This document shows positions 1 through 64,000 of a DNA stretch of 64,000 nt, piece by piece; position 1 is the first letter of the stretch; every line of letters starts with the position of its first letter. The stretch lies in the sequence record LT603033.1. One strand, written 5' to 3'. Both the position numbers and the translations under genes were made by a program. The notes below the pieces were generated by a model, which was not told the DNA's origin, ran no database searches, and worked only from the letters and a program-made list of their open reading frames with translations.

Positions 1-966
1 ATAACTACTGGCATTTAAACCAGTTGCATATACACCAGTACTCGTAACTAGTATACTAGATTGTGTTGGGTATCCTGTATGAATTGAATACAAAGTTCCA
101 GTTGGTAATGTCGTACTATTGCTCCCTAATACAGCAAGTGCCGAACTGGTTGTGGTATTGTTACCCCATGCACCATTACTCGCTAAACCACCAACTAGAA
201 ACTGACGTGCACCAGAACTTGGATTCTCAACCAAAGCACTGACTGCACCACTTGAGCATCCAGTGTATTGTAACGTTTTTGTGTATGTTGTACTTGGTTT
301 ATATAAAGTATATTCATTAAATGGTGTCCATGTGGTACTGGTACTTATACCTGACGTACCACCACCAATATATAAATTATTTTGTGTATCAAAAAACATT
401 ACACAGTTATTTGTTGACTGTATTTGTGCAATATCAACATTAGGCGTGACAGCTTTTACAAATGATCCATCTGTTATTTGTTGAGTACTACCAGTACCAT
501 CAGCGAATTGTCTAGCCCCACTCCAACCAGTACTCCATATTGTATTATTATCCATTAATACCGTAAACCACGTAGTACCTCCATACATCTGTTTAATTGA
601 AGTACTTGAACTTTGCGTGTACAAATTTTCAATATATTGGTTATAACTTAAAAACGTAGTAGTACTAGTTGGTAAACCAACATGATCACCATATCCACAA
701 TAAAAATAATTTGAGTCATTGTCTTTTACTAATAAAGTTCCTTGTGTAAGCCAGCAATCGTTAACGTTTTCTCTAATTAATGTCCATGATTTTAATGCAG
801 TGTTGTTTCCTCTACCGAATTTCCCAAAACTATTATTCCCACGTGCATATAGTTGACCATCCGTATACAGAACCACAACATCTAAATCAGTTGGGATTAT
901 TTTCTTAATTTGAAGTGGTACTGGGGCAATATTCCCATAATTCATCATTCTTGCAAAAGGTAACAT
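1..966 (-). CDS. RCC1/BLIP-II-like repeat protein (3' end outside window)
   Basis: ATG at 966 after GGAGG RBS; reads MLPFARMMNYGNIAPVPLQIKKIIPTDLDVVVLYTDGQLYARGNNSFGKFGRG; same N-terminus as the 7 neighbours; missed by the ORF track because the stop is off-window. Confidence 0.85.
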   Translation of the reverse strand, partial: MLPFARMMNYGNIAPVPLQIKKIIPTDLDVVVLYTDGQLYARGNNSFGKFGRGNNTALKSWTLIRENVNDCWLTQGTLLVKDNDSNYFYCGYGDHVGLPTSTTTFLSYNQYIENLYTQSSSTSIKQMYGGTTWFTVLMDNNTIWSTGWSGARQFADGTGSTQQITDGSFVKAVTPNVDIAQIQSTNNCVMFFDTQNNLYIGGGTSGISTSTTWTPFNEYTLYKPSTTYTKTLQYTGCSSGAVSALVENPSSGARQFLVGGLASNGAWGNNTTTSSALAVLGSNSTTLPTGTLYSIHTGYPTQSSILVTSTGVYATGLNASSY

Positions 967-1035
967 AAATTCCTCCTTTATTCATTATACTATATTTAAT
1001 ACAAATAAGAAAGCCAGTACAGTGTACTGGCATTA
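922..1035 (-). repeat. RCC1-array cassette repeat (terminator + promoter + RBS + first ~15 codons)
   Basis: Hairpin GCCAGTAC-AGT-GTACTGGC at 1013-1031 followed by a T-rich tract on minus, then TAAATATAGTATAAT and AAAGGAGG-ATG. Confidence 0.85.
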
Positions 1036-1037
1036 AA

Positions 1038-2186
1038 TCATTGTATAAATGACATATCAACTTCTGTATAACTAAGAATGTTTTGTCCAGCAATTCCCCC
1101 CATTACTACCATAGCATACCCACAATAATATAATTGCTCAGTGTCCGTAAGTATAAGTGAACCAGATGGAGTGCGTACCAAATTACACGAACTATTAAAC
1201 GAAGTATACGAAGGAGTATATGAGTACTGATTAATATTATTACCAACACCTAATTGACCAAATCCATTCGACCCAGATGCGTATAGAACTTCATCACCTT
1301 TAGCTATATGTGATGCCATGTTACTAACACACGTATATAGAGTATAAACTCCTGAACTCAATAATGTCGGAGTTTTGTATTGTATATCGGTAGATGAAGA
1401 AGTACCACCTGTGCCAAATTCGTTCCCGTATTGTGCACCGAACTGTTTACCACAAGCGTACAAATTATTATCCGATTTAATAAAAAATGTACTCTGATAA
1501 CTTACATCAAAATCTATAACATCTGAAGCAATCATCGTCACCCCAGTAATAGAAGTTTGATTACCTGTACCTAACTGATAGTAATAGTTAAAACCACAAC
1601 CCCATAAAGTATTATCTTCTTTTAGGTATATGTTACCAACTGCCTTTTTAACCGAAGTTATAGTATCTACCCTTTTGAATGTGTTAAAAGAATTAATGTT
1701 TGTACCATCACCAAATGATGATAGGTTCGAGTTATTGTTAACTCCACAACAATACAACGTACCATCGTTTGTTATCAAATTCACCTTCATATCATTAAAA
1801 CTACTCATGTATTTTATATCAGAAACATTAATACCACCTGATGTTATCCACGTAGTACAGTCCGTCCACAAAGTTTTTGTATCAGTTACACCAGTGAATG
1901 CCTTCGTGTTACCAGTGATAAAAACTTTTCCAGTACCTTTCTCTTCATACAATTGACAACTACTACTGTTATCTTCCAATAGAACTCGTTTAACATTCTC
2001 TGCACAAAGAATAAATTTACTCGATGCTACACCTGTTCCAGTACCCCAATTCGTCGCAGAAGATGCATACAACTTATTAGTATAAGTATCATGAAGATAC
2101 ATAGAATCACTTGAATATATTTTAAAACGCCTATCCTTACCAGGGGCAATATTCCCATAATTCATCATTCTTGCAAAAGGTAACAT
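1038..2186 (-). CDS. RCC1/BLIP-II-like beta-propeller repeat protein
   Basis: 382 aa; GxNxxGQLGxG repeats (GFNYYYQLGTG, GSNGFGQLGVG); MLPFARM N-terminus. Confidence 0.85.
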   Translation of the reverse strand: MLPFARMMNYGNIAPGKDRRFKIYSSDSMYLHDTYTNKLYASSATNWGTGTGVASSKFILCAENVKRVLLEDNSSSCQLYEEKGTGKVFITGNTKAFTGVTDTKTLWTDCTTWITSGGINVSDIKYMSSFNDMKVNLITNDGTLYCCGVNNNSNLSSFGDGTNINSFNTFKRVDTITSVKKAVGNIYLKEDNTLWGCGFNYYYQLGTGNQTSITGVTMIASDVIDFDVSYQSTFFIKSDNNLYACGKQFGAQYGNEFGTGGTSSSTDIQYKTPTLLSSGVYTLYTCVSNMASHIAKGDEVLYASGSNGFGQLGVGNNINQYSYTPSYTSFNSSCNLVRTPSGSLILTDTEQLYYCGYAMVVMGGIAGQNILSYTEVDMSFIQ

Positions 2187-2255
2187 ATTTCCCTCCTTTA
2201 TTCATTATACTATATTTAATACAAATAAGAAAGCCAGTACAGTGTACTGGCATTA
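2142..2255 (-). repeat. RCC1-array cassette repeat
   Basis: Near-identical to 922-1035; hairpin at 2233-2251. Confidence 0.85.
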
Positions 2256-2257
2256 TA

Positions 2258-13922: not shown

Positions 13923-14123
13923 ATGTATAAAAACTTCTATATAAGTAAACTAAAAGAAAATGAACAAGTATGGATTAGATCTATAATTCCACTGGCATTT
14001 AATAGATATGCATTTAACAGATGTACCGAGATTGCTATAGACCCTTATAATATTAAAGAGAATGTACAGTATAATCAGTATAATCAGTACTACTATATCT
14101 TAATGATTATATATAGGAAGTAA
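13923..14123 (+). CDS. small hypothetical protein, family A
   Basis: MYKNFY ... MIIYRK. Confidence 0.8.
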   Translation: MYKNFYISKLKENEQVWIRSIIPLAFNRYAFNRCTEIAIDPYNIKENVQYNQYNQYYYILMIIYRK

Positions 14124-14314
14124 TATAGCTAGGGGAAGCTCCGTAGTGGAAGCATTATACAGGCTTTAACATATGTTGCATATGTTAAAATTCAGCCTGG
14201 ACAAATGCGATCACTAGGATTCTCCCCAGGCTAAACCCCGTAATCATAGGTAGTCATAAGTAATCATATATAAACATTTATATGAGCACCGTAGAATCAC
14301 AGAATGATTATATA

Positions 14315-14509
14315 TGATTCAGTACTGATTAGTATAGACAAGATTGCTCAAGAATGCACGGAAATGTGTGTGAATGATTCAGTACTGATTAGTATAGACA
14401 AGATTGCTCAAGAATGCACGGAAATGTGTGTGAATGATTCAGTACTGATTAGTATAGACAAGATTGCTCAAGAATGCACGGAAATGTGTGTGAATGATTC
14501 AGTACTGAT
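14315..14509. repeat. 60-bp exact tandem repeat, 3.25 copies
   Basis: Unit TGATTCAGTACTGATTAGTATAGACAAGATTGCTCAAGAATGCACGGAAATGTGTGTGAA at 14315, 14375, 14435 and partial at 14495. Confidence 0.95.
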
Positions 14510-14655
14510 ATGCCACTAAGTAGGCAGAGGAAGTCTGCCGTACTTTGTAGTTTCCAAGCTCCTTTTCCATTTTGCAAATTACATCAAATGTAATCAAAAG
14601 TAATCACGCAATGATTAGTACTGAATTATTACTTTCACCTTAATTACAATTACCC

Positions 14656-14675
14656 TTTTACCCTTCGGGGTAAAA
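14656..14675. terminator. bidirectional hairpin with cUUCGg tetraloop
   Basis: TTTTACCC-TTCG-GGGTAAAA. Confidence 0.6.
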
Positions 14676-14883
14676 TTCAATTACCCCTTGAGGCTCCAGC
14701 AAAAAGTTGGTTAGTACTCCATCCTAAATCTCGATCCTAAAAATTTTGGAGTACCTATGAAATAAAAGTTGGATCTTCGAAAGTTGAAATTTACGTTGGG
14801 ACGTTTATGATTTGTGGGATATAATGATGTTTGTAGTCGGGTAGTTCTCAAGAATATCAGTACTGAATAATGAAAGAAAGCTA

Positions 14884-14911
14884 TTGACATTATGATTCAG
14901 TACTGTATAAT
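14884..14911 (+). promoter_or_regulatory. sigma70 promoter with no downstream ORF
   Basis: TTGACA-16 nt-TATAAT. Confidence 0.75.
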
Positions 14912-14917
14912 GTTCTA

Positions 14918-15215
14918 CATAGCTTCAAGGGGTGATGAGTTGCTGCGAACAATTCATTTACTCTACCTCCTGTCGTGAGACAGTACAGAAAAGATAGTTC
15001 CTCCTGTGGTGGTACATCTTTTTGAACCTCATATGAAAATCGTAATAACAGTACTGATATTAACAGAATGGTGTCAGTACTGATTTTAATCTAAAGCATT
15101 ATACCACCAGCTTGTGCTGGTGGATTCCCTCTAACAGTATTCAGTACTACATGATGGTCTTCATCCTCCTAGGGTAACATAGTGAGGGCTATGATGGCAG
15201 TACTGAATACTCCCT
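14918..15215 (+). ncRNA. candidate structured non-coding RNA
   Basis: Follows the 14884 promoter; successive hairpins CTGTC-GTGA-GACAG, CCACCAGC-TTGT-GCTGGTGG and AGTATTCAGTACT...AGTACTGAATACT; no ORF longer than about 20 codons seen. Confidence 0.4.
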
Positions 15216-15308
15216 TTCAAAAGATAGATCTATGGTATAGTACTGACGGATTTTGGGTGTAGTTACCCTGGATGGATTTTGGGCGTAGATATGTCTAGCC
15301 CTCCAGAA

Positions 15309-15434
15309 GTCTGGAAGTAAAGATGGCTATCCATCTAGACGGCTAAACGGCTAGATTTCTGGATGGCTGGATGGCTAGACGTTTGGACGGCTAAACGGCT
15401 AGATGGTTACACGTCTGGAAGTATAGACGGCTAA
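15309..15434. repeat. short direct-repeat cluster (YGGCTA units)
   Basis: About 8 YGGCT(A) units; GACGGCTAAACGGCTAGAT at 15338 and 15386; GTCTGGAAGTA at 15309 and 15413. Confidence 0.85.
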
Positions 15435-15589
15435 ATCAAAATTTTATTTTGTTTTTCCAATAGTTCCCCTACCGCGTGGGGATAGTTTCCCCGCAGTATC
15501 TGGAGTTAGATTTTTCTGAATCTGGAATCATTATCTTATAAACTGGGGGCAATGTCAACGACCTGGACGGATATTTTTAAAAATTTTTT

Positions 15590-15649
15590 CAGTACTGAAT
15601 TTTGGGCGTAACTATGCACCCGGTGGGCTTGAGTCTTTCTCGACTTGAT
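15590..15649 (-). ncRNA. candidate two-hairpin RNA/leader element, family R1
   Basis: Minus-strand TTGCTT-16-TATAAT promoter, AGTC-GAGAAA-GACT hairpin, AGCCCACCGGGTGC at 15616-15629. Confidence 0.5.
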
Positions 15650-15749
15650 GGAACTATTATACAGTACTGGAAAAATAAAGCAATACCCTGGATGAAAAAA
15701 GTTTTAATTAATTTGCTTGCCATCCTGGGCCGGACTATGGTACTATAAT

Positions 15750-15797
15750 TCAGTACTGAGAAAGTGCGTTAACCTGCTAGGGTGCGGGAGTGTATCC
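15750..15797 (+). ncRNA. candidate R1 element (degenerate)
   Basis: AACCTGCTAGGGTGCGGGAGTGTATC at 15771; tail matches the 17766 copy. Confidence 0.4.
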
Positions 15798-16060
15798 TTT
15801 TTTTATATCTTGAATTTTGGACGGATCTTCCCACCCCCTGGGGTATCCGCTTTCTCGCGTCTATGTAGTAATTATACGCTTTTTCAGGATCAAGTCAATA
15901 CCTAAAAACAAAATAATTGAAAATAATTTAACGCGTTTAAACGGCCCGTAAAGCCCTGGAATGATTGGAATGGTGCAAATGTATAGCTTGGGTGTATTAA
16001 TGCGTTAGAATGCGTCTGAGGCCGTTTTACGGGGTGTAGTAGTGATTTGGTGGATTGATT

Positions 16061-16200
16061 CAGTACTGAATAATAGTACTCCTATATAGAAAGATAGTTC
16101 CCCTGGATGGTTGCAGTACTGAATAATAGTACTCCTATATAGAAAGATAGTTCCCCTGGATGGTTGCAGTACTGAATAATAGTTCCCCTATATAGAAAGA
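16061..16200. repeat. 53-bp tandem repeat, about 2.6 copies
   Basis: Unit CAGTACTGAATAATAGTACTCCTATATAGAAAGATAGTTCCCCTGGATGGTTG at 16061 and 16114, partial at 16167. Confidence 0.95.
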
Positions 16201-16231
16201 AAACTATTTTAAAAGTATTTGTAGAAAGTAC

Positions 16232-16259
16232 TTGCAAACTATGTTTAACGGCGTATAAT
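16232..16259 (+). promoter_or_regulatory. first early-type sigma70 promoter
   Basis: AAAGTAC-TTGCAA-16-TATAAT-GTTTTACAT; near-copies recur before 16771, 17453 and at about 17930. Confidence 0.8.
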
Positions 16260-16314
16260 GTTTTACATCGAGAGCGGGAACACTTCCCGCTACATATTAC
16301 GAGAGATTAAAACG

Positions 16315-16677
16315 ATGGCGACTCAAATCACTAAAATTATTGCTAACCTGGTTAACTTTCGCGACGAGATGAAAGATCTTCCGGCAGAAACGGTAAAAAT
16401 TCACATTGCAGCTTATCGGGAACTTATTGCAATGTTACCTCTTAAGCGTGAACAATACGCCGCTACCGTGATGCTTGATGCGATGATCCATAAGATGATC
16501 GCCAGTGATTTAACGATGGTTTATCAGTATATGGGCGAAAATTTCGCGGTGTATAGTAAACCAGTACCAGGAATGGAAAGTACAGAAGTATTACACGGTT
16601 TAAATTTAAAACAAGATGCATGGGATAATATGCCTCGTTTCCTGGTATGGGCTGACAGTGGCAAAATTTACGAATAA
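16315..16677 (+). CDS. hypothetical early protein
   Basis: Start trimmed to MATQITK after promoter, hairpin and GAGAG RBS. Confidence 0.75.
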   Translation: MATQITKIIANLVNFRDEMKDLPAETVKIHIAAYRELIAMLPLKREQYAATVMLDAMIHKMIASDLTMVYQYMGENFAVYSKPVPGMESTEVLHGLNLKQDAWDNMPRFLVWADSGKIYE

Positions 16678-16770
16678 GTTTAATAAAGTACTTGCAAACT
16701 ATGTTTAATGGCGTATAATGTTTTACATCAGGTGGGGAATAGTTCCCCACTATATAAGAGGATTAAAAAA

Positions 16771-17010
16771 ATGGCTAAATCAAAAATGTTCTTAGGTCAC
16801 AAAAACAAAACTCATTGGAATGTAAGCCTTTGGATTAATAACGATGAATCATTATACCGGTTGGCCCTGGACTTTATTGCCGCCAATACTAATCGCAATG
16901 ATGCGGCCCGTCATATGATGTTATTTTTAGAACAGACTGGACAAGATAAAACACCGGACGGATTCAAATATAGCACTACTGCGATCCGTGCGGCAATGGT
17001 TGGAATGTAA
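16771..17010 (+). CDS. conserved phage hypothetical protein (HWNVSLWINNDE motif)
   Basis: GAGGA RBS; motif recognisable from many phage early proteins; function unknown. Confidence 0.75.
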   Translation: MAKSKMFLGHKNKTHWNVSLWINNDESLYRLALDFIAANTNRNDAARHMMLFLEQTGQDKTPDGFKYSTTAIRAAMVGM

Positions 17011-17098
17011 TAGAATAGAATTTATTTAAAGTACTATTGCACGGGGATAGTACTTTATAATAGTGTTTTATTCATACACCAACGATAAGGGCAACAGC

Positions 17099-17365
17099 AT
17101 GAATATTAAGTATTTTGCGACGCGTGAACAAGCTCGGATCGCCGCACGCCAGGACGGGGCAACGTTTAAAGATATGGGCGTACAATCGGAACGTGGTAAA
17201 CGTTGGGCCATTGTAAAGCGTAGTACCGCCAGATCATTACAGTACTGGTTAGCGGCCTTAAAAAGACCCGATAGTGTATCGCGACGAGTGGTAGAAATAA
17301 AGCTCGACCGAAAGGGCAACCGCGTGACCGTGTACCGTACTAAAAAGATTGCAGTACTTGAATAA
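17099..17365 (+). CDS. hypothetical early protein, paralog of 28556-28951
   Basis: Shared ATRE-AR-AR-G-FKDMG, RWA and DRKGNRVTVY. Confidence 0.75.
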   Translation: MNIKYFATREQARIAARQDGATFKDMGVQSERGKRWAIVKRSTARSLQYWLAALKRPDSVSRRVVEIKLDRKGNRVTVYRTKKIAVLE

Positions 17366-17452
17366 AAAGTACTTGCAAACTATGTTTAAAGGCGTATAAT
17401 GTTTTACATCGAGAGCGGGAACTCTTCCCGCCTATAACCTGGAGTAATAAAA

Positions 17453-17683
17453 ATGACTAATATGTATATGACTGAAGTTAAAACCGTAAAAGATACTACC
17501 ACGAATAAAACTACTTACTTACAGCGGATCTGTGGTGTATGGCAACGTATCAGCAAATCAAAGTACTTTAAATTAACATCATATGCAAACCGTTCGGATT
17601 CATTCAGTACTGAAATAAAAGGTAATAAAGTACACCAATACGGCACTTATTATTATTATAGCCTGGACGCGATTGCAGTATAA
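17453..17683 (+). CDS. hypothetical early protein
   Basis: GGAG RBS, own promoter and leader hairpin. Confidence 0.75.
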   Translation: MTNMYMTEVKTVKDTTTNKTTYLQRICGVWQRISKSKYFKLTSYANRSDSFSTEIKGNKVHQYGTYYYYSLDAIAV

Positions 17684-17748
17684 GCAGTTTACAAATCTTT
17701 ACAATTGCCGGTATTGACTTATTTTGTCAGTACTGGCATAATGTATTC

Positions 17749-17795
17749 ATTGGCAGATAAGCCGTAGCCCATAGGGTGCGGGAGTGTATCTATAG
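17749..17795 (+). ncRNA. candidate R1 element
   Basis: TTGACT-17-CATAAT promoter; GGC-AGATAA-GCC hairpin; AGCCCATAGGGTGC at 17766-17779. Confidence 0.5.
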
Positions 17796-17804
17796 AAAAA
17801 GTAG

Positions 17805-17851
17805 TTTATTACAGTTACAATTGTGCACCCGGTGGGTTAGCTGTTGTCATG
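17805..17851 (-). ncRNA. candidate R1 element, convergent with the 17749 copy
   Basis: Minus-strand TTGACA-17-CATAAT; AACCCACCGGGTGC at 17825-17838. Confidence 0.5.
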
Positions 17852-17965
17852 GGGTATATTATGCCAGTACTGGATAGTGCTGTCAATACCTTTTTACTAT
17901 TCAGTACTGAAAACTATTTTTAAAAAGTACTTGCAAACTATGTTTAAAGGCGTATAATGTTTTAC

Positions 17966-18040
17966 ATCAGGACGGGGAACGAAATAAGTAACTCCCCATT
18001 AAGTAGCCCAGGAGTAAGGCACACGAAAAACTCCCCTGAT
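17966..18040 (+). ncRNA. candidate structured RNA, family R2
   Basis: ATCAGG/CCTGAT closing stem, GGGGA/TCCCC and GGAGT/ACTCC hairpins; promoter upstream, next promoter directly downstream. Confidence 0.55.
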
Positions 18041-18108
18041 AAAATAGTTTGAAAATTGTTTTTAAAAGCGTATAATACTTACATCAACTACTGAATGAGG
18101 GTTACAAA

Positions 18109-18720
18109 ATGAAAACTATCACTACTACTACTTTCGTTATGGATTTTTCTGAATTGAACGCAGAACAAAAAACGTCAGCTATCGAACTGGTTCGGGAACG
18201 TGAAAAAAACTCAAACGACAATTATTTTTCTGAAAGTGAAATTGAATACTATAAAGAAACAGTACTACCGGAATATGGCATTAATGACGCTGAAATACAA
18301 TTCAGTGGTTTTTGGTCCCAGGGTGACGGTGCATCAATCAGTACTGACCACGTTGACGCAGTGAAGTTTTTACGCAAGGTAAGAGCATTAACTAAGTATC
18401 GCTCAATCCGTCACCTGCTGAATGAAGATGATTTGGCGATGAGTGTAAAGCGTTCTCACTCTCACTACTCGCATGAGAACACTGTAAGCGGGTACATTGA
18501 ATCGGCTTACACTGATTTAACCGCAAAACAAGAAACGTTAGTTAATGAGCTTGAGGAACTACTCACTGAAACTATTCGTGAATTGTCACGCAAGTTGTAC
18601 CGTGATTTAGAGAATGCATATGAGGATCAATTCACTACTGAAAACATCGTAGCACTGATTGAGGGTAACGAGTATCAATTCAATGTTATTGATGGCGTAG
18701 TAGAATCAATCGAATATTAA
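18109..18720 (+). CDS. acidic phage protein with FSGFWSQGDGAS motif
   Basis: 203 aa; motif recalled from a phage family often auto-annotated as antitoxin; function unverified. Confidence 0.7.
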   Translation: MKTITTTTFVMDFSELNAEQKTSAIELVREREKNSNDNYFSESEIEYYKETVLPEYGINDAEIQFSGFWSQGDGASISTDHVDAVKFLRKVRALTKYRSIRHLLNEDDLAMSVKRSHSHYSHENTVSGYIESAYTDLTAKQETLVNELEELLTETIRELSRKLYRDLENAYEDQFTTENIVALIEGNEYQFNVIDGVVESIEY

Positions 18721-18812
18721 TTCAAAAAGTACTGGACACTAAGCAATAAAGGCGTATAATACTTTATATCGAGAGCGGGAATAGTTCCCGCTACTAATGA
18801 GGAATACTACAA

Positions 18813-18977
18813 ATGAATACTTTTACCTTCGCTCAATTGAACGCCCTGGATGTATTGTCTGATGCTTTGCGGGATGCAACTGAAAGCGGTTTATTTGACA
18901 ATGTTGACATTCACCCTGATGTAATTAATAATTTTTGTGATGCTATCGCAGAAGTACTGGAAGATCTAAAAAAATAA
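18813..18977 (+). CDS. small acidic hypothetical protein (54 aa)
   Basis: GAGGA RBS, own promoter and hairpin; not in track. Confidence 0.65.
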   Translation: MNTFTFAQLNALDVLSDALRDATESGLFDNVDIHPDVINNFCDAIAEVLEDLKK

Positions 18978-18987
18978 TAGAAAGTAC

Positions 18988-19015
18988 TTGCAATTAGTTT
19001 TTAGTACTGTATAAT
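18988..19015 (+). promoter_or_regulatory. early sigma70 promoter
   Basis: TTGCAA-16-TATAAT with AGTACT in the spacer. Confidence 0.8.
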
Positions 19016-43938: not shown

Positions 43939-43961
43939 CATCCATCAATAGGTAATAATAT

Positions 43962-45307: not shown

Positions 45308-45635
45308 TACATTTGATATTAATAAGTTAAGAGAATGGTTTTATAGTATTGAAATTGAAGCCATCCCGTATCATAGATATGAACAATATAATTTAACCAG
45401 TATTGATATCAGTGAGTTGTACGCGTATTATCAAAGTGCATTAGAGATGCATAAGTTATTTTTGAGTACAGATTTTGTTCTAAATTACAATTTTGAGGAA
45501 TTTAATAATTATAATTTAGTACAGAAATATGTAGTAGCAAAGTATATGTACCTTCAAGGAATTACAAGTAATTTGGAATTCAATACAGTCCTTGCTTTAG
45601 TTGAGGTAATTTTATGCAGTACATGTATGATTTAG
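45294..45635 (+). CDS. hypothetical protein
   Basis: GGAGG RBS; no family C motif seen. Confidence 0.7.
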   Translation: MKLNNTFDINKLREWFYSIEIEAIPYHRYEQYNLTSIDISELYAYYQSALEMHKLFLSTDFVLNYNFEEFNNYNLVQKYVVAKYMYLQGITSNLEFNTVLALVEVILCSTCMI

Positions 45636-46120
45636 AGTTTAGTTTAGATGCTGCATTTAAATATGTTCACAAGATAGAAACAATATACAGTACATTATGT
45701 GCAATACAATCAGTATCATCTGAGTTTGATGTTGGTGAAAAATATCAGGTATGGAATAATACATTTCTAAACAAAGAACGTTGCTCTACGGGGTTTAATA
45801 TTTTAACATTTAATCCCAGCAATTGTTACCCAGAGAAGCATGAACGTTATCCGAATGACGACATGTGGTTTGATTACACAAAAGATGGTGATATGTCATC
45901 CCTTGTAGTTCCTGATGATTTTAATGCCGAAGATTTAACGGAAGAGTGGTGGTTTCAACAGAATTTAGTACACGATGATATTGATTTATTTTTTTATGTA
46001 GTATTTAAAATGCTTTACCACAACAATATATTAAAAGATAGTGTGTTTTTTTCATGTCTATATATTGATGATTTGTACAATGAAATCCAAATCAACATTC
46101 CCAGCACGCCTGTATCGTAA
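45614..46120 (+). CDS. family C protein
   Basis: LTEEWWFQQNLVHD. Confidence 0.8.
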   Translation: MQYMYDLEFSLDAAFKYVHKIETIYSTLCAIQSVSSEFDVGEKYQVWNNTFLNKERCSTGFNILTFNPSNCYPEKHERYPNDDMWFDYTKDGDMSSLVVPDDFNAEDLTEEWWFQQNLVHDDIDLFFYVVFKMLYHNNILKDSVFFSCLYIDDLYNEIQINIPSTPVS

Positions 46121-46135
46121 GATATGGGCTTTTTT
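46108..46135 (+). terminator. Rho-independent terminator
   Basis: GCCTGTATC-GTAA-GATATGGGC-TTTTTT; followed by promoter TTGACA-17-TATCAT at 46146-46174. Confidence 0.75.
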
Positions 46136-46202
46136 CGTTTTGGTATTGACAAAGAAGTGCAAAGCTGTTATCATGTGTAATCATTTTAAAGGAGAACATA
46201 TA

Positions 46203-46715
46203 GTGAGTTTCATAATCCCAAGTACATACGAAGATGCATCAAGTGCAGTTCATAAGATTCATTATATTTTTAATTTAATTATTAGATCTGCAAAAAATAA
46301 AATGTATGCACCTCTTGTGGAATACGATAAAAATGAGGAAATTTTTGTTAGCACAGACCAAATTATTTTTCCATATTTCAATGAAGATAGATTGTGGTTC
46401 ATGCATTTAGCTGCATTACAAAAATATAAAATGTCAATTCGTAATAATTTGGATATACCGTTATATCATCCTGATATTGGAGAGGATGAATATTTTCAGT
46501 ACAGTACAGTACACCGCCATGAAGATATCTTTGTTGCTATGCTTATTGCTAAATTGAATACCGTTGATTTGGAGCAGTACAAATACAATAATAAATCATG
46601 TAAGATCATAATCCCTGCATTCATAGCTCTTTATGATTATGTGGTGCATAACAAAAAAGATGATACATATGCTTTCAATGAAGAGTATTTGAATTTTTTT
46701 AAGGAGAACATATGA
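46203..46715 (+). CDS. family C protein
   Basis: GTG start behind GGAG; GEDEYFQYSTVH. Confidence 0.75.
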   Translation: MSFIIPSTYEDASSAVHKIHYIFNLIIRSAKNKMYAPLVEYDKNEEIFVSTDQIIFPYFNEDRLWFMHLAALQKYKMSIRNNLDIPLYHPDIGEDEYFQYSTVHRHEDIFVAMLIAKLNTVDLEQYKYNNKSCKIIIPAFIALYDYVVHNKKDDTYAFNEEYLNFFKENI

Positions 46716-47239
46716 GCAGTGACGTGCAGAAATCAATGACATTCAATGAAATTGGTGCATTTAAAGATAAGATCATTGATTGTCTTGAATACATGATTTG
46801 TAGTAATATCGAAAGTATCGAGATATTTAACAAGACAAATCGCTCTTACCATATGATGTACATTGCAAACAATAATGGTATCATTCCATTTATTTCGGAT
46901 AGTACAATATGGTACGCATGTGATACGAAAAAAACCACAATAGGTTTACATTTATTTGAGACACATTATGATCTAATTATTCCTGAACATTGTATGCAAG
47001 AAGAAGAATATTTTCAAATGCAATGTATACATTCACCATTAGTGTTGTTTAGTTTATATATTATACCTTATATCACCAAATGTGTTCATGAGAATAAAGC
47101 TCCGTGGAATCATGAATTTGTATCGTTGAAGTTATTGTATAATGTATTAGTAGAATATTATGATTACAGGCACAATGGTACAATCAGTGATGTATGGGAT
47201 TTTGAATCGCTAAGGGTGAAAACATACACAGGTGAATGA
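46712..47239 (+). CDS. family C protein
   Basis: MQEEEYFQMQCIH. Confidence 0.8.
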   Translation: MSSDVQKSMTFNEIGAFKDKIIDCLEYMICSNIESIEIFNKTNRSYHMMYIANNNGIIPFISDSTIWYACDTKKTTIGLHLFETHYDLIIPEHCMQEEEYFQMQCIHSPLVLFSLYIIPYITKCVHENKAPWNHEFVSLKLLYNVLVEYYDYRHNGTISDVWDFESLRVKTYTGE

Positions 47240-47855
47240 TATGACCAGAATTAAAATGTATGATTTGATGCAGTACAGTAAAATTGCCATTCCGGTGCTT
47301 AATAAAGTGCTGGATGCATTCATTGCCAAATACCCTGAGAATTCAGTGTTATGTATTCCATTTAGTGTTCCAGATAAAGATGATATATTTCAAGTGAATG
47401 TCAGTACACGTGGTATTACATTGCAGCAGAAATACATGGATACGGAATATTATGGAATAAAGTTGGATTCAGTACAGGGTTCTAAATCAGCCTATGATTT
47501 TTTTGTTCCTAATAACATCGAGTCATGGGAAACAAACATTTCAAAGAAAGATGAAAATGATGTTCCTATTAGTGGTGTGTTCAACAATAAAGTTTTTTAT
47601 TATTACGAAACCGACAAATTCCCTGAAGAGTTATATTACAATTCAGAAATGAATGAAGATGTAGATGCATTCATGTTTCAATTATCTTTAGTACATGATA
47701 TCATTGATGTTCAAGAGTTAAGAGCAGAAATCAATTTAGCTAAAGAGTTATCGGACATGCTGCCACCGTTTAGTATGCTTTTTTGTGAAGGTGGTTATTT
47801 TTCAAAAGAAGTGTTTGAACATTTCGTAGATGTTGTAAAAGGGTTGGATATATAG
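47232..47855 (+). CDS. family C protein
   Basis: DAFMFQLSLVHD. Confidence 0.8.
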   Translation: MNDMTRIKMYDLMQYSKIAIPVLNKVLDAFIAKYPENSVLCIPFSVPDKDDIFQVNVSTRGITLQQKYMDTEYYGIKLDSVQGSKSAYDFFVPNNIESWETNISKKDENDVPISGVFNNKVFYYYETDKFPEELYYNSEMNEDVDAFMFQLSLVHDIIDVQELRAEINLAKELSDMLPPFSMLFCEGGYFSKEVFEHFVDVVKGLDI

Positions 47856-47856
47856 T

Positions 47857-48051
47857 ATGCTTACAGTTGATGTTAAACAAAAATACCGTAAGTTTGATTG
47901 GTTCACCGATAGTTTCCAGCTTGAATTATTACATATGAATATCAGTGAAACATTATGTGCAGAAACACAAGATGAATTTGATGATAGAGTGATGAACATA
48001 GTAATGCTTTCTTGCTTTAAACATTTTGGTTATTTTTTCGGACAGAATTGA
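47857..48051 (+). CDS. small hypothetical protein
   Basis: ORF in the operon. Confidence 0.65.
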   Translation: MLTVDVKQKYRKFDWFTDSFQLELLHMNISETLCAETQDEFDDRVMNIVMLSCFKHFGYFFGQN

Positions 48052-48059
48052 GGTAAAAA

Positions 48060-48575
48060 ATGCATCAACACAAGCATCATTCATATGATTTTGCAATTAA
48101 CATTATGAAGTTCATTCGAGCGTTGGAGGATGGGAAGCTTAGTCATAAGTACAGGAAAGAGGGTAACAATTGGTTCAGAAATGATTCCGAGTTCAGTTGT
48201 CATAAAATCGTGTATAGTAATCAGTACAGTGCCAATTACCTACAAGATGTAGTGATGTGTTTTGAATACGTGTTGCAGTTCAGGGGTTCAATCCAAGATG
48301 AGTTGATGGAGAACATGTACATCAGATACCTTCCAATGCTCAAAGATGAAAATGTATTATTAAATTCAATATACCAACGAGTTCGTGAAATTGAGTGCAG
48401 GGATATATTAGATACAGAAGAATCGTATTTCCAGCAATCCCTGATTTATTCACCTGATTTATTACAGGTACATAATTTGTTTAATACATTACGTCAGAAC
48501 ATCAGTACAGACATATTTTTGTCATTATCGGATTATGATACATTTGTCAAAGATTTAGAGGAAATAGGATTATGA
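48060..48575 (+). CDS. family C protein
   Basis: TEESYFQQSLIY. Confidence 0.8.
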   Translation: MHQHKHHSYDFAINIMKFIRALEDGKLSHKYRKEGNNWFRNDSEFSCHKIVYSNQYSANYLQDVVMCFEYVLQFRGSIQDELMENMYIRYLPMLKDENVLLNSIYQRVREIECRDILDTEESYFQQSLIYSPDLLQVHNLFNTLRQNISTDIFLSLSDYDTFVKDLEEIGL

Positions 48576-48916
48576 GTAGATTTTCAGTTTATATAGTAAA
48601 CGTCAGTAAAGATGGTAGTTTAATTGAATTTGATGTAGTTGATAACAATGATAATTCATATGGTATTAAGGTACAGGACAATGTAGTGCAGTTCAGTACA
48701 AGGACAAATTTTGAGAATCCAGTCCAAGTTCCGAATTTCATAGAAGATGAAGCTGCACGATTCCAATACGAAACGGCCTTTGATAATATGCATATGCATA
48801 TTATTATGCAACAAAGTTTAGTTCAATTGCTTCAGGTATTCAGACAAAATATATATGTACATGAAGTGTCGATTAATGGCATTCAAAGTTCCGTATTGTT
48901 CGGTACAAATATGTAA
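48572..48916 (+). CDS. family C protein
   Basis: EDEAARFQYETAFD. Confidence 0.75.
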   Translation: MSRFSVYIVNVSKDGSLIEFDVVDNNDNSYGIKVQDNVVQFSTRTNFENPVQVPNFIEDEAARFQYETAFDNMHMHIIMQQSLVQLLQVFRQNIYVHEVSINGIQSSVLFGTNM

Positions 48917-48926
48917 GGAAAGTACA

Positions 48927-49478
48927 ATGAGTTCAATGAGTTTATTAGATACATTAGAAAAAGACAGAAGTGCAATTAAGCGTTTAAAAGAGCAAGTACA
49001 AAAGATTGTATACAACGTTGATAAGTTTGAAGTCCCAGGAAGATTTGGTGATATTTCCCATACGGAGATCAAATCCCTTAAGTCAGATTTGTTGATTAAA
49101 AATAAAAATGGGTTGATTTTAGTTTTGAGTTCAGATATGATGGGGGCAACACATAGTTATAATGCAGTATCGGTGCGTTCAGAGTGTGAAGGTATATATC
49201 TATCACAGGGTTTCAATAGCGAGACACAGGTTTGTTTTTGTGATGCAGTACATGACCCTATGAAGTTCACGAGAAGTGAAGCCCAAGCGTTATTAGAGCT
49301 ATCAGACGAGAGTTTGTTTCAGTACAGTACAATGTATGACAATGATAAGCTTCGTTGTATGTACGCTGTAAAGCATTATACACAGGAGTTCTCTGGATTT
49401 GCATACCTTTTAGTTAGAACCAATACCAGATATATTGATATGTTAGAAGATTACATCGATAAAGTTGTTAATGTATGA
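48927..49478 (+). CDS. family C protein
   Basis: Start trimmed; LSDESLFQYSTMYD. Confidence 0.8.
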   Translation: MSSMSLLDTLEKDRSAIKRLKEQVQKIVYNVDKFEVPGRFGDISHTEIKSLKSDLLIKNKNGLILVLSSDMMGATHSYNAVSVRSECEGIYLSQGFNSETQVCFCDAVHDPMKFTRSEAQALLELSDESLFQYSTMYDNDKLRCMYAVKHYTQEFSGFAYLLVRTNTRYIDMLEDYIDKVVNV

Positions 49479-49493
49479 TTATGTGATGGGATA

Positions 49494-49670
49494 ATGCTGA
49501 TGAAAGAGTTATTTGAAGATCAGTTCAATACATATGTGGATAATATTCTTTATTCCAGCCGTGCTAGTCAACGAGGAAATCGTGCTTACAATATAGATTA
49601 CCTATTAGTGGTGCTGAGTTCACAGTACACCAATGCGGTACAAAGGGTTTATTATGAAAAGTGCAAGTAA
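49494..49670 (+). CDS. small hypothetical protein (58 aa)
   Basis: Fills the operon gap; not in track. Confidence 0.55.
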   Translation: MLMKELFEDQFNTYVDNILYSSRASQRGNRAYNIDYLLVVLSSQYTNAVQRVYYEKCK

Positions 49671-49863
49671 TAGTGATATTGCAAAGGAGAAGTTGGAGTG
49701 CAGTTTAGATTACGGTTTAAATGATTTTCTTACATGCACAATGTACAGGAATGATGATTATGAGCAATCCGTAATTTCGTTGCACAGATATTTCGAAATA
49801 ATTTACGCAAGATATCTTAGAAGGTTAGAGGGAATAGGGGATTGGAATTATGATTACGTTTGA
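49654..49863 (+). CDS. small hypothetical protein
   Basis: Start trimmed to MKSASNS. Confidence 0.6.
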   Translation: MKSASNSDIAKEKLECSLDYGLNDFLTCTMYRNDDYEQSVISLHRYFEIIYARYLRRLEGIGDWNYDYV

Positions 49864-50074
49864 AGAGCCGGAAGTGGTATATTGCTATAGTGTGAAAGGT
49901 TTTGAATACATGATGGATTCTATTTTGAAGGATACATATTTGGTTCAGATTGCAGTTGCAGATAATACAGATAATGCATTACAGCGAGTATTGAATATAT
50001 ACGAGAAGACGAGTCGAAGGCTTTGTGCAATGAAAAGGATTGAAGAAATCAAGCTTTCTAGGCTGAATAAATAG
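49850..50074 (+). CDS. small hypothetical protein
   Basis: Overlaps the previous stop. Confidence 0.65.
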   Translation: MITFEEPEVVYCYSVKGFEYMMDSILKDTYLVQIAVADNTDNALQRVLNIYEKTSRRLCAMKRIEEIKLSRLNK

Positions 50075-50105
50075 AGACGTTTCATTTTGACAGGCCGCAG
50101 GGGGT

Positions 50106-50160
50106 NNNNNNNNNNNNNNNNNNNNNNNNNNNNNNNNNNNNNNNNNNNNNNNNNNNNNNN
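50106..50160. other. assembly gap (55 N)
   Basis: Run of N flanked by GC-rich tracts. Confidence 0.99.
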
Positions 50161-50276
50161 TATTGTGTTTTTCAGAGTACAGTTCATGTTTCCTGAAACA
50201 AAAAATACCCCGCCCCCGCAACGTGCTCCTTATATTGGAGTTTACCTTATTAATTACAGTAGAGATTACAATTGAA

Positions 50277-50660
50277 ATGAAGATGCAAATAAAATATAAT
50301 GAATTTTGTGCAAGGACATGGATGTACACTGGTGAGTTAGTTACGCACTGTAACTTATACAAGGGTGATTTAAACTACGCCAGGGACAAGATTTTAAAGT
50401 ACTGGAATGCTGACTTTTATTTGATGGATTTTAGTACTGGGTTTCATGGGATATCTATCGAGATGCCGGACTATACAGTACTTGATGATGCTGCACTGTT
50501 TCAGGAGGCATTAGTATTTGATAAGAAGTACATCTGTACATTAGAAGAGATGATTGAATTACAGCGTAGAATTAAATGTATTCACAGGGAATGTATAGAT
50601 ATCTGGTGCAGTACTGGTGAGGCCGATTTATGGAAATTTTTTAATCTAGGAGAAGAGTGA
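50277..50660 (+). CDS. family C protein
   Basis: Start trimmed; LDDAALFQEALVFD. Confidence 0.75.
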   Translation: MKMQIKYNEFCARTWMYTGELVTHCNLYKGDLNYARDKILKYWNADFYLMDFSTGFHGISIEMPDYTVLDDAALFQEALVFDKKYICTLEEMIELQRRIKCIHRECIDIWCSTGEADLWKFFNLGEE

Positions 50661-62415: not shown

Positions 62416-62436
62416 AGACCCGTATGGGTCTTTTTG
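62415..62436 (+). terminator. Rho-independent terminator
   Basis: AAGACCC-GTAT-GGGTCTT-TTT; followed by promoter TTTACA-17-TATACT at 62447-62475. Confidence 0.8.
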
Positions 62437-62502
62437 TGTTTATGGCTTTACAAGAGCATTCAGGTGTGTTATACTTGATTTTAAATAGAGTTGGAGGAAT
62501 CT

Positions 62503-63069
62503 ATGAGTACTGAATTAATTAAAGAAGTCACATTACTTCTGAAGCATTGTTTTAAGTTCATTCCTGATACTGGCTCACGCCAGTACATTAAAGTTAATGA
62601 GAAATATAACATCAATATCCTTGTATCTGAAACTGCGAGCAGTTATGCTAACATTGAGTTGGATTCTGAAGAAAAATATACAGTATTACAAATCATAGCA
62701 GATGTACAACGTAAACAAGATTATCGTTCTTCATTTTACAACGATTATCTGTGTGTTTGCTCAAACTTCAGTGAGAATAAAATTGTGTATAAGAATTTAT
62801 ACACACATGAAGTGATTGATACATATAATTATAAAATTTCATCTGATGAATACAATGTTCTAATGTTCAACGCAAACCTTTTGTATGATGCCAGTACTGT
62901 ACGCTGTTTAGAGTTAGCATATAAAATTCCAAAGATCATGGAAAGAAAAGATTTGATTCACTTTAAAACTATTTTAAAATACAGTACAAAAGAATTAGAG
63001 GATTTAGTACAGGCTCTTAAGAATTTCATTAATGAACATGTACCTGTTAAATTCGAGGATGCACAATGA
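62503..63069 (+). CDS. family C protein (degenerate motif)
   Basis: GGAGG RBS; NVLMFNANLLYD. Confidence 0.75.
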   Translation: MSTELIKEVTLLLKHCFKFIPDTGSRQYIKVNEKYNINILVSETASSYANIELDSEEKYTVLQIIADVQRKQDYRSSFYNDYLCVCSNFSENKIVYKNLYTHEVIDTYNYKISSDEYNVLMFNANLLYDASTVRCLELAYKIPKIMERKDLIHFKTILKYSTKELEDLVQALKNFINEHVPVKFEDAQ

Positions 63070-63650
63070 ACCATATCAGAACTAAAATTTTGAGACTCAT
63101 GCATGACATTGCAGAACTTTCAGAGATTCATGACATTACGGAAATTGTTGAATTTGATAATTATCGACTGAAAATTGAAAACAAATCCAAACATCGTTTT
63201 GGTTCAGTTCAGTTGGATGTATATAAAACTTATGAATTTTCTAAAAAAATTAAAAGTTCATGGGATACGATTACTATGTACATTCGCACATCCAGAAATC
63301 GTGAACGTATTGGTTCTATTTCTTCTAATATGGTATTTGCGAATGCATTACATGAAAAAATGAATAAAATTGTAGAATCTGATTTCAGTGAAGATGATGG
63401 TTTTATTGGGTTGGATGTTCCACCAGAATTAGACCAAAGTGAAGATATTCGAGATGCATTCATTTTCCAGAAATCATTGTTGGACAATTACAAAGAATTC
63501 GAGTACTTAATGCTTTGTTACGATACTGCAAAAATTCTTGATTGTGGTGAACTAGTTATGTACAATGATTTTATCAATTGCAAGACTGATGTTCTGAATA
63601 CACTACTTCAAAATATAGAATCTGTTAAGGAAAAATATGAACGCTTATAG
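63066..63650 (+). CDS. family C protein
   Basis: RDAFIFQKSLLD. Confidence 0.8.
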   Translation: MNHIRTKILRLMHDIAELSEIHDITEIVEFDNYRLKIENKSKHRFGSVQLDVYKTYEFSKKIKSSWDTITMYIRTSRNRERIGSISSNMVFANALHEKMNKIVESDFSEDDGFIGLDVPPELDQSEDIRDAFIFQKSLLDNYKEFEYLMLCYDTAKILDCGELVMYNDFINCKTDVLNTLLQNIESVKEKYERL

Positions 63651-64000
63651 TTATATGACAGAACGCCATCAGTTATTATATGATATCAGTAAAAAAATGC
63701 TATCAATTGTTGGTAGTGCGAAAGAAATTGAAAAACAATATCTCATCCGTGATGTATCAATTTCATCTAAATGTTGGTCAAATGAATATTACGACCACGG
63801 TATTCTTACTATTTCTGGGGCCAGAAATATTTGTATTGTAAAAAATAAAAGTAAAAGTAATGAAGAGTGTGAGATTAGAACCGATATACAAATTAAGGAT
63901 GATGGAAGTTTTTCACATCACCCATTCCATATTAGTACTATTGGTGTTTTATATAATATTAAAGTACTATTCGGTGATGAAGAGTATGTGTTAAAAGCTA
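63637..64000 (+). CDS. hypothetical protein (3' end outside window)
   Basis: AAGGA RBS; open to the window end (MNAYSYMTERHQ...FGDEEYVLKA). Confidence 0.75.
   Translation, partial: MNAYSYMTERHQLLYDISKKMLSIVGSAKEIEKQYLIRDVSISSKCWSNEYYDHGILTISGARNICIVKNKSKSNEECEIRTDIQIKDDGSFSHHPFHISTIGVLYNIKVLFGDEEYVLKA

Follow-up and report, generated by a model that had tools for sequence, protein, structure and literature searches.

The stretch examined here, hereafter the window, comprises 64,000 nucleotides corresponding to bases 62001-126000 of Escherichia phage vB_Eco_slurp01 (LT603033.1), a Rak2-like jumbo phage. It contains RCC1-like genes followed by terminator hairpins, a non-coding stretch that by inference holds the left physical end of the virion DNA, the early-gene part of the direct terminal repeat with its numerous small genes, and two genus-specific gene blocks (see the table below). 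A preliminary description had reported that the palindrome AGTACT is massively enriched throughout this DNA, in coding and non-coding parts as well as in promoters and terminators, and had inferred a genome-wide self-mark, either methylated or bound by a phage protein, coupled to promoter function. We checked each of its specific claims. The observation holds, and the enrichment is in fact stronger than had been stated.

Coordinates of the features considered, in positions of the 64,000-nucleotide window
Position	Strand	Feature	Observation
1..64000		Whole window	266 AGTACT, of which 54 are CAGTACTG and 18 are TCAGTACTGA
967..1037	-	Terminator hairpin behind an RCC1-like gene	GCCAGTAC-ACT-GTACTGGC, built from two half-sites, GTAC in both arms
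2187-2257, 3398-3467, 5789-5859, 7039-7107, 8218-8288		Like hairpins	
14101..16257		Non-coding stretch	22 sites (10.2 per kb); inferred left physical end of the virion DNA at about 14517-14534
14314..14509	+	60-bp tandem repeat, 3.3 copies, 100% identical	Each copy carries TCAGTACTGA; abuts the inferred genome end
14884..14911	+	Consensus promoter (example), TTGACA-16-TATAAT	CAGTACTG directly before the -10 hexamer (site at 14899), a second site at 14859
16061..16200	+	53-bp tandem repeat, 2.6 copies	Each full copy holds CAGTACTG and a second AGTACT 13 nt further on
16258..34218	+	Early-gene part of the direct terminal repeat; small genes, each with its own sigma-70 promoter	114 sites (6.35 per kb); synonymous opportunities to write the motif used 68% of the time, against 32-57% elsewhere
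18983..19015	+	Promoter with two sites (example)	Sites 20 bp apart; AAAGTACT overlaps the first T of the -35 hexamer TTGCAA, TAGTACTG abuts TATAAT
21626..21661	+	Promoter with two sites (example)	CAGTACTA-TTGACA ... TAGTACTGG-CATAAT; the TG of the motif's flank gives an extended -10; sites 22 bp apart
34219..39459	+	Desert 1, starting right after the terminal repeat; about 25 overlapping genes of 66-96 aa with no homologue in RaK2 or GAP32	No AGTACT and only 15 GTAC in 5.2 kb
42114..50397	+	Desert 2; paralogues specific to the genus (phrog_19795 three times, among others)	No AGTACT in 8.3 kb although there are 70 GTAC; the masked letters are not counted
50106..50160		Masked stretch (N) of 55 letters	Intergenic in the public annotation, breaks no reading frame

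AGTACT is the most frequent of all hexamers in the window, with 266 copies against 21.6 expected from base composition, 50 from an order-2 Markov model and 110 from an order-3 model. The order-4 model yielded 224, but is not a valid null, as its inputs AGTAC (411) and GTACT (361) are mostly made of the motif itself. In the whole genome, 904 copies were found against 118 expected. As had been claimed, 21 copies lie between 14300 and 16200 (about 0.64 expected), nine of them in tandem repeats, namely four in the 60-bp and five in the 53-bp array. However, repeats do not explain the excess, as 211 of the 266 window sites and 835 of the 904 genome sites have unique flanks, whereas the remaining 55 window sites lie in look-alike contexts such as tandem repeats, duplicated promoters and paralogues. 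Apart from the 55 masked positions, the window is letter for letter identical to the public record, so that the flanks of the masked stretch are continuous and its length is exact. The latter lies between annotated CDS ending at 50074 and starting at 50322, and all three plus-strand frames are closed within 35 nt before it. The position of the virion DNA end was deduced from the start coordinates of related genome records, while the termini of fEgEco12 have been determined by PhageTerm and digests (PMC13070987).

The optimal form of the motif is not the bare ScaI site but the 8-bp palindrome CAGTACTG (190 copies in the genome, 55-fold over expectation), which weakly extends to the 12-bp palindrome TTCAGTACTGAA. 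The same octamer is 83-fold enriched in RaK2 and 34-fold in GAP32. Enrichments of the different flanks fit a product of per-half-site weights (C 7.4, A 2.2, T 1.9, G 1.1), as the two flanks contribute independently and multiply: CAGTACTG is enriched 55-fold and the motif with C/T flanks 14-fold, whereas GAGTACTC (1.2-fold) is not enriched. In addition, the flank profile is symmetric. The half-site CAGTAC is 9-11.5-fold enriched even if counted alone, and CAGTAC not followed by T still 2-4-fold. Sites occur on average once per 385 bp (one CAGTACTG per 1.8 kb) and are spread evenly along genes, with a Poisson-like spacing and without helical phasing.

[quoted passage not shown] With amino acid sequence and per-gene codon usage held fixed, coding regions of the whole genome hold 697 sites against 208 ± 12 after shuffling of synonymous codons (z = 40). 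All three frames are enriched 3-4-fold, and the density in non-coding DNA is even higher (4.3 per kb), so that the excess is not a translation effect. In slurp01, 52% of Ser-Thr pairs are written AGT-ACT (14% expected), and across the enriched phages compared this fraction was 52-60% (12-14% expected), while 62-72% of Val-Leu pairs after an A-ending codon are GTA-CTN (17% expected). Furthermore, the protein sequences themselves are bent towards the motif, as Ser-Thr, Val-Leu and Gln-Tyr pairs are 1.3-1.8-fold over-represented but their reversals are not, and PA5oct shows none of these effects.

The trait is shared by five genera of enterobacterial Rak2-like phages, with 937 copies in RaK2, 1011 in GAP32, 1235 in CBB and 757-1166 in five IMG/VR genomes, against 137-187 copies of the control word. 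PA5oct, T4 and more distant relatives are not enriched or are depleted, and in PA5oct and T4 AGTACT itself is under-represented. Between slurp01 and 121Q, 92.5% of sites are kept, against 84.8% of hexamers of the same composition, that is, sites are lost half as fast as controls. At greater evolutionary depth, 21-28% of sites occupy the same aligned place in other genera (104 of 367 in RaK2 and 77 of 340 in GAP32), against about one site expected. This retention runs against a very strong avoidance of palindromes in the same genome, in which 24 of 64 palindromic hexamers have zero copies. AGTACT goes the opposite way by about 8-12-fold, and must therefore be exempt from, or protected against, ScaI-type enzymes. 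It also sets phage DNA apart from host DNA, as its density of 2.6 per kb is about 30 times that of E. coli K-12 (0.086 per kb; 400 AGTACT and 78 CAGTACTG in 4.64 Mb).

Site density peaks in the 20-kb terminal-repeat early region, next to the genome end and with an array of sites at the end itself. The promoter arrangements of the preliminary description, AGTACTG-TATAAT, AGTACTGG-CATAAT and AAAGTAC-TTGCAA/TTGACA, are real, as is the GTAC core in the terminator stems behind the RCC1-like genes, and AAAGTACTTG occurs 15 times. Among 45 strong sigma-70-like promoters between 9 and 34.5 kb, 19 have the motif 7-8 nt before the -10 hexamer and 14 have it against the -35 hexamer. These offsets (-7/-8 and -27 to -30 from the -10 hexamer) and a pair spacing of 20-22 bp recur in RaK2, GAP32 and the genome G005, but are absent in PA5oct. 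Nevertheless, the motif is not simply a sigma-70 promoter element such as an extended -10 or spacer, since the fixed positions hold for 33 sites in these 45 early promoters, while 697 of the 904 sites lie inside coding regions.

The closest analogue is the highly iterated palindrome HIP1 (GCGATCGC) of cyanobacteria, likewise an octameric palindrome hugely over-represented in coding and non-coding DNA (one per 1131 bp in Synechocystis), kept by selection and of unsettled function, which co-occurs with an m5C and an m6A methyltransferase (PMC6604393). Our motif fulfils two criteria of such palindromes, namely over-representation by about an order of magnitude or more in both coding and non-coding DNA (7.6-12-fold for AGTACT and 34-83-fold for CAGTACTG), and maintenance by selection rather than by copying of a repeat. 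In contrast to HIP1, which belongs to cellular chromosomes and whose core is a proven methylation target, it belongs to a virulent phage clade, is only a possible methylation target, sits at fixed promoter positions and peaks in the terminal repeats of a genome that otherwise purges palindromes. It also resembles Dam GATC, Chi and DNA uptake sequences, short words kept at high density by selection because a protein reads them genome-wide, whose density matters more than their exact position and which shape codon choice. However, GATC is not enriched over composition and is here under-represented (611 against 1095), while Chi and uptake sequences are asymmetric and depend on orientation, in contrast to the palindromic motif and flanks found here. 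True Chi is a separate enriched word in this genome, and no reading machinery is known for AGTACT.

Taken together, the interpretation offered in the preliminary description is partly supported: the motif is a genome-wide feature acting at the DNA level and not a side effect of codons or amino acids, kept by selection, distinguishing phage from host DNA and coupled to early promoters in several genera, but on present evidence it may be either methylated or bound. Our favored reading, which remains tentative and is not proven, is that AGTACT in its form CAGTACTG is maintained as a recognition site for a two-fold symmetric, sequence-specific DNA-binding factor of the Rak2-like jumbo phages, most likely a phage-encoded protein dimer. 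The graded, multiplicative preference for the two flanks is what the additive binding energy of a symmetric dimer on duplex DNA predicts, and fits it better than a strict hexamer-specific enzyme. Given the contrast in density with the host chromosome, such a protein would load almost only on phage DNA, making the motif a sequence-based self mark. In the terminal-repeat early region, where the sites flank the -35 hexamer and fill the spacer before the -10 hexamer of host-type promoters, two helical turns apart, the factor would work as an operator that modulates early transcription, most likely shutting it off. While the excess, its symmetry and graded flanks, selection on the sites and on their number, the restriction to one clade, the contrast with the host and the fixed promoter positions are demonstrated by our analysis, we only infer that the sites are bound, that the reader is a protein dimer and encoded by the phage, and what binding achieves, be it organization or protection of phage DNA or early shut-off. 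No reader or writer was identified, the 117 core proteins specific to the clade are mostly of unknown function, and structure prediction for the three conserved early proteins gave moderate models (pLDDT 70 and 73 for the two folded) with no significant fold match. Moreover, an 8-bp palindrome is short for a classical helix-turn-helix dimer and more typical of restriction or modification enzymes, or of ribbon-helix-helix proteins. An operator role would explain about 30-40 sites but not the roughly 700 coding sites, whose benefit is inferred only, and the random spacing gives no indication of ordered cooperative arrays.

The main rival is an epigenetic mark, which we consider possible but less likely. 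In this view AGTACT would be the target of a phage methyltransferase, and the dense methylated sites would provide a Dam-like signal (for strand discrimination, or for timing of promoters on injected versus newly replicated DNA) as well as protection against ScaI-type host restriction, with selection acting on the number of methylatable sites. Indeed, both a cytosine-5 and a small phage N6-adenine methyltransferase are present in all four enriched genomes searched (slurp01, RaK2, GAP32 and CBB) and absent from PA5oct, and the enriched 8-mer of HIP1 is likewise longer than the sites of the enzymes that methylate its core (PMC6604393). Some protection also seems needed for 900 ScaI-type sites in a genome purging other palindromes, and their density is close to that of GATC in E. 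coli, about 1 per 250 bp. However, the cytosine-5 enzyme aligns over its full length with DNMT3A/B/C and looks CpG-specific, bisulfite data of RaK2 were reported as CpG methylation (PMC3622015), and AGTACT has no CpG, which makes this enzyme an unlikely writer. The N6-adenine enzyme (TIGR01712, 92.8 bits), of no known specificity, remains the more plausible candidate in the absence of modification data for this motif. DNA of fEgEco12 was cut as predicted by ten enzymes, including EcoRI, HindIII, ClaI, SmaI and NruI (PMC13070987), so that there is no broad adenine or CpG modification, although the ten, which include neither ScaI nor RsaI, do not test AGTACT. Methylated cytosine would further raise the loss of sites by deamination, yet AGTATT/AATACT is neither enriched nor depleted (1.09 of expectation), and a 7-fold effect of each flanking base is large for a hexamer-specific enzyme.

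Other explanations appear weaker. Recognition by a phage nuclease, nickase, topoisomerase or primase, by which frequent sites would help replication, recombination-dependent replication, repair or genome processing, is unlikely, even though the enriched half-site, the random spacing and uniform use along genes (fitting a "the more the better" site) and the high density next to the genome end are compatible with it. A template 5'-CAGTA would give a pppACUG primer on either strand, in the style of the T7 and T4 primases, which start primers with pppAC at GTN templates. But primases read 3-5 bases, whereas the full palindrome is favored about 5-fold over the half-site alone and AGTACT with A or T flanks is enriched without CAG. 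A double-strand cutter at 900 sites would fragment the genome, no candidate nuclease turned up in the 20 clade-specific proteins scanned, and the fixed promoter positions are not explained. Very unlikely is the hijacking of the host nucleoid-occlusion protein SlmA, by which replicating phage DNA spread through the cell would block FtsZ and cause filamentation. The SlmA-binding sequence GTGAGTACTCAC has the identical AGTACT core, is read by a symmetric dimer and gives a genome-wide positional signal from dispersed sites (PMC3020112), all enriched phages have hosts among the Enterobacterales, and a close relative, Sharanji, filaments E. coli with no division inhibitor known in it (PMC11895373). 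However, SlmA needs G and T at positions 1-2 and a purine at position 3, flanking AGYRCT (PMC3020112), whereas the phage sites have T/T at positions 1-2 and prefer C at position 3, where G is the least favored base (0.37-0.49 of expectation). Full SlmA sites number 0, 0, 1, 0 and 0 in five genomes, as chance predicts, flanks of the SlmA type, RAGTACTY, are half as frequent as expected, and no SlmA homologue is encoded by the phages. The E. coli chromosome carries only a few tens of SlmA sites, against about 900 AGTACT here. Finally, a functionless by-product of mutation or repair bias, codon-pair preference or copying of promoter and repeat cassettes is already largely refuted by the unique flanks, the excess in all frames and in non-coding DNA, the conservation at two evolutionary depths, the biased protein sequences and the removal of other palindromes, although slow amelioration of foreign DNA under a bias would also predict the two site-free gene blocks. 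A very-short-patch type conversion is not indicated either, as the one-mismatch neighbours other than AGTATT/AATACT are at 1.0-2.1 of expectation, apart from AGGACT/AGTCCT at 0.48, which is not a deamination precursor.

Although currently unlikely, a further-reaching view is compatible with our data, in which the motif is the DNA half of a sequence-based self-marking system. A symmetric phage protein, possibly carried in the virion or made at once from the terminal-repeat genes, would load only on DNA carrying CAGTACTG at high density, and would thereby organize, shield or privilege the phage genome. The same occupancy would switch off the early promoters, and might also produce the block of cell division seen in a relative. 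In a jumbo phage that makes no nucleus, this would do by sequence what T-even phages do by base modification and chimalliviruses do by a protein shell.

The analysed stretch equals bases 62001-126000 of Escherichia phage vB_Eco_slurp01 (LT603033.1) once the same 55 positions are masked in the record. The phage is an Asteriusvirus (121Q/PBECO4 group), that is, a Rak2-like jumbo myovirus of 348 kb. The 55 masked letters were left unread, but their run lies between annotated genes that end at 50074 and start at 50322, no + frame is open into it, and its length is exact.

The observation made in the preliminary description, a massive enrichment of AGTACT, is real. The motif occurs 266 times in the window and is the commonest hexamer of all, whereas 21.6 copies are expected from base composition, 50 from an order-2 and 110 from an order-3 Markov model. 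An order-4 model gives 224, but it is built from sub-words that the motif itself dominates. The 21 copies counted in 14300-16200, nine of them in two tandem arrays, were also as described. The whole genome contains 904 copies against 118 expected, and that of 121Q contains 903. Copying of repeats was rejected as the main cause, since only 55 of the 266 window sites and 69 of the 904 genome sites sit in look-alike contexts. With regard to the recognised unit, the flanks are symmetric, with C before and G after the hexamer, and CAGTACTG has 190 copies against 3.5 expected, which is 55-fold in slurp01, 83-fold in RaK2, and 34-fold in GAP32. Mixed flanks follow a product of half-site weights (C 7.4, A 2.2, T 1.9, G 1.1), whereas GAGTACTC is not enriched at all, and there is a weak extension to TTCAGTACTGAA. 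Furthermore, one-mismatch neighbours are not depleted, by which a repair-driven conversion was rejected.

[quoted passage not shown] In 300 kb of called genes we counted 697 sites, split 365/111/221 over the three frames, whereas shuffling synonymous codons within each gene gave 208 ± 12 (z = 40) and shuffling codon order gave 126. Density outside called genes is higher still, at 4.3 against 2.3 per kb, although our gene calls are crude (512 genes, 86% coding) and miss some small genes, so that non-coding counts are upper bounds. Of all Ser-Thr pairs, 52-60% are written AGT-ACT (12-14% expected), and 62-72% of Val-Leu pairs following an A-ending codon are GTA-CTN (17% expected), while in PA5oct both figures are 2%. 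The pairs Ser-Thr, Val-Leu, and Gln-Tyr are themselves 1.3-1.8 times over-represented, their reversals are at 1.0, and PA5oct shows no such effect for Ser-Thr or Val-Leu. The DNA word has bent the proteome. In addition, the phages carry tRNAs for the codons that the motif inflates, namely tRNA-Ser for AGY codons, read by ARAGORN with anticodon ACT (an exact match to AGT) in slurp01 and GCT in RaK2 and GAP32, and tRNA-Thr (TGT) in all three. GAP32 also has a tRNA with anticodon CTA, which reads the amber codon and is called tRNA-Pyl by ARAGORN.

Between slurp01 and 121Q (96.4% identity), 92.5% of sites are intact, against 84.8% of hexamers of the same composition. In orthologues at about 57% amino-acid identity, 104 of 367 sites (RaK2) and 77 of 340 (GAP32) lie at the same aligned position, where 1 is expected, and each genome still has about 400 sites in those genes. 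Individual sites are therefore protected, many turn over, and the total is held. Spacing is Poisson-like (CV 0.93-1.25), with neither regular spacing nor helical phasing, and sites are distributed evenly along genes except for a dip over ribosome-binding sites. Outside the terminal repeat, no gradient from the genome ends is seen once protein constraint is controlled.

The trait belongs to the enterobacterial Rak2-like clade. RaK2, GAP32, and CBB contain 937, 1011, and 1235 copies, respectively, against 142-187 of the control word TCATGA, whereas PA5oct has 15 against 40 and T4 has 29 against 51. Five IMG/VR genomes with a capsid protein at least 89% identical have 757-1166 copies. After correction for composition, a putative Eneladusvirus record is 8.3-fold and ranks first, a 72%-identity fragment is 2.7-fold, and relatives at 64-69% are 1.0-fold or 0.2-fold. 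In contrast, E. coli K-12 has 400 AGTACT and 78 CAGTACTG in 4.64 Mb, so that the phage is about 30 times denser and one phage genome holds more sites than the host chromosome. The same phage genomes show an extreme avoidance of palindromes: in slurp01, 24 of 64 palindromic hexamers, nearly all with four or more G/C, have zero copies in 348 kb where 32 or more are expected, and RaK2 has 16 at zero, GAP32 27, and PA5oct none. GATC is also under-represented in slurp01 (611 against about 1095 expected). Chi (GCTGGTGG), however, occurs 18 times on the + strand and 8 times on the - strand, against 0.9 expected each; half of the + strand copies lie in the terminal repeat, all in one orientation, and RaK2 (15/3) and GAP32 (14/8) are likewise enriched.

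Sites are densest in the early region, which corresponds to the terminal repeat. Its limits were inferred from related records whose ends were determined, among them fEgEco12, in which 20,993-bp direct terminal repeats were shown by PhageTerm and digests (PMC13070987). Here, 68% of synonymous opportunities to write the motif are used, against 32-57% elsewhere, and a 60-bp array with one TCAGTACTGA per unit abuts the inferred end. Of 45 strong sigma-70-type promoters, 19 have the motif 7-8 nt before the -10 hexamer and 14 have it against the -35 hexamer, with pairs 20-22 bp apart; the same offsets recur in RaK2, GAP32, and a further genome, G005, and never in PA5oct. Conversely, two gene blocks are entirely devoid of the motif, and profile scans of their genes against PHROG found only families of unknown function. 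Three raw-read sequencing runs held no read of the stretch and hence provided no evidence on nicks, ends, or expression.

Features of the slurp01 window and of related genomes (window coordinates unless a handle is given; L002-L019 denote the whole slurp01 genome, L051-L052 parts of RaK2, L074 and L075 parts of GAP32)
Coordinates	Strand	Feature	Observations
1-9443	-	Eight tandem RCC1-like ("chromosome condensation regulator") paralogues	Each has its own TATAAT promoter and a terminator hairpin built from two motif half-sites; fEgEco12 has about 17 such genes
14101-16257		Stretch of 2.2 kb with no annotated gene at the inferred physical end of the genome	60-bp and 53-bp tandem repeats, 16-48-bp GGACGGCTAAACGG-type repeats, many CCCTGG(A)TGG words (CCCTGG 25 copies against 2.8 expected in the window); may hold packaging or replication signals
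about 14517-14534		Start of related records whose ends were determined	Inferred genome end
14.5-34.2 kb		Region corresponding to the terminal repeat	Early region; 6.4-10 sites per kb
about 14.5-33 kb	+	Chi sites	9 sites
16001-23000		Part of the early region	100% match to record 78001-85000; 22 Campylobacter phage records, plus some Phapecoctavirus and Justusliebigvirus records, match parts of the early region at 60-80% identity
22107-22376, 26869-27042, 28547-28951		The only three genes of the fast-evolving terminal-repeat early region conserved in all enriched genera	Two encode basic proteins (pI 9.6-9.7) of unknown fold
about 34218		End of fEgEco12
34219-39459		Block of tightly packed, genus-specific paralogous small genes of unknown function	No AGTACT; begins right after the terminal repeat; also poor in GTAC
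42114-50397		Block of tightly packed, genus-specific paralogous small genes of unknown function	No AGTACT, although 70 GTAC
50106-50160		Masked stretch (N)	55 positions
L002:2929-3789		Cytosine-5 DNA methyltransferase	286 aa; outside the window
L002:15634-15725 and 17075-17148; RaK2 L051-L052; GAP32 L074		tRNA-Ser and tRNA-Thr
L075:13273-13345		GAP32 tRNA with anticodon CTA

To identify possible writers and readers, the genomes were searched for methyltransferases and for proteins sharing the distribution of the motif. A cytosine-5 methyltransferase and a 173-aa phage N6-adenine methyltransferase, which lies at 136567-137088 in slurp01, are present in all four enriched genomes searched (slurp01, RaK2, GAP32, and CBB) and absent from PA5oct, whereas a Dam-type methyltransferase (TIGR00571) is absent. 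The best solved relatives of the former are the eukaryotic DNMT3A/B/C catalytic domains, aligned end to end (E about 3e-23). Phylogenetic profiling yielded 117 proteins present in all enriched genera and absent from PA5oct and two further genomes, G021 and G008, but PHROG scans of 20 of them gave unknowns, or RNA-repair and nucleotide enzymes. Folding of the two conserved basic early proteins (22107-22376 and 28556-28951) gave models with pLDDT 70 and 73 and no Foldseek match in the PDB. Thus, no reader was found among the proteins examined.

Taken together, our analysis shows that the excess is very large, acts at the DNA level, is under selection, and is clade-wide, whereas its recognition by a protein and any effect on early transcription are inferred, and its methylation is hypothetical. 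The preliminary interpretation, a genome-wide self-mark that is either methylated or bound by a protein and is coupled to promoter function, is partly supported. We tentatively favour a symmetric protein reader that would mark phage DNA and act as an operator at early promoters. The rivals are a methylation mark, which we consider possible but less likely, an enzymatic processing or priming site, which seems unlikely, a hijack of the host protein SlmA, which is very unlikely, and the absence of any function, the most improbable of all. The first two are not exclusive of each other. With respect to methylation, the N6-adenine enzyme remains a possible writer, but the RaK2 paper mentions CpG methylation from bisulfite data (PMC3622015), and AGTACT has no CpG. 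Moreover, fEgEco12 DNA is cut as predicted by ten enzymes, so there is no broad modification, although none of the ten tests AGTACT. The SlmA site shares the AGTACT core, but it needs G, T, and a purine where the phage has T, T, and C (PMC3020112); no SlmA-type sites were found, and the phages encode no SlmA homologue. That a relative, Sharanji, filaments its host with no known inhibitor (PMC11895373) can be regarded as a lead only.

Our literature searches found no paper describing the motif in these phages, and the nearest known system is HIP1 of cyanobacteria (PMC6604393), from which the motif described here differs in being carried by lytic phages. Phage genomes are known for shedding palindromes, and here a whole clade of 350-kb phages does so to an extreme, yet keeps one palindrome at about 900 copies, at a cost visible in codon choice, in the phage's own tRNA set, and even in protein sequences. 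This implies a strong, still unnamed function acting on the whole genome. As what HIP1 does has been an open question since the 1990s, these E. coli phages, with a defined motif, defined mutant controls (GAGTACTC and the two site-free gene blocks), and two candidate enzymes, offer a tractable model. The motif is also a simple diagnostic signature for this clade in metagenomes, and a caution for anyone recoding or synthesising these phages for therapy. Finally, the finding bears on how jumbo phages without a nucleus tell self from host, that is, on how they distinguish, organise, or protect their DNA, and on how they shut off early genes.
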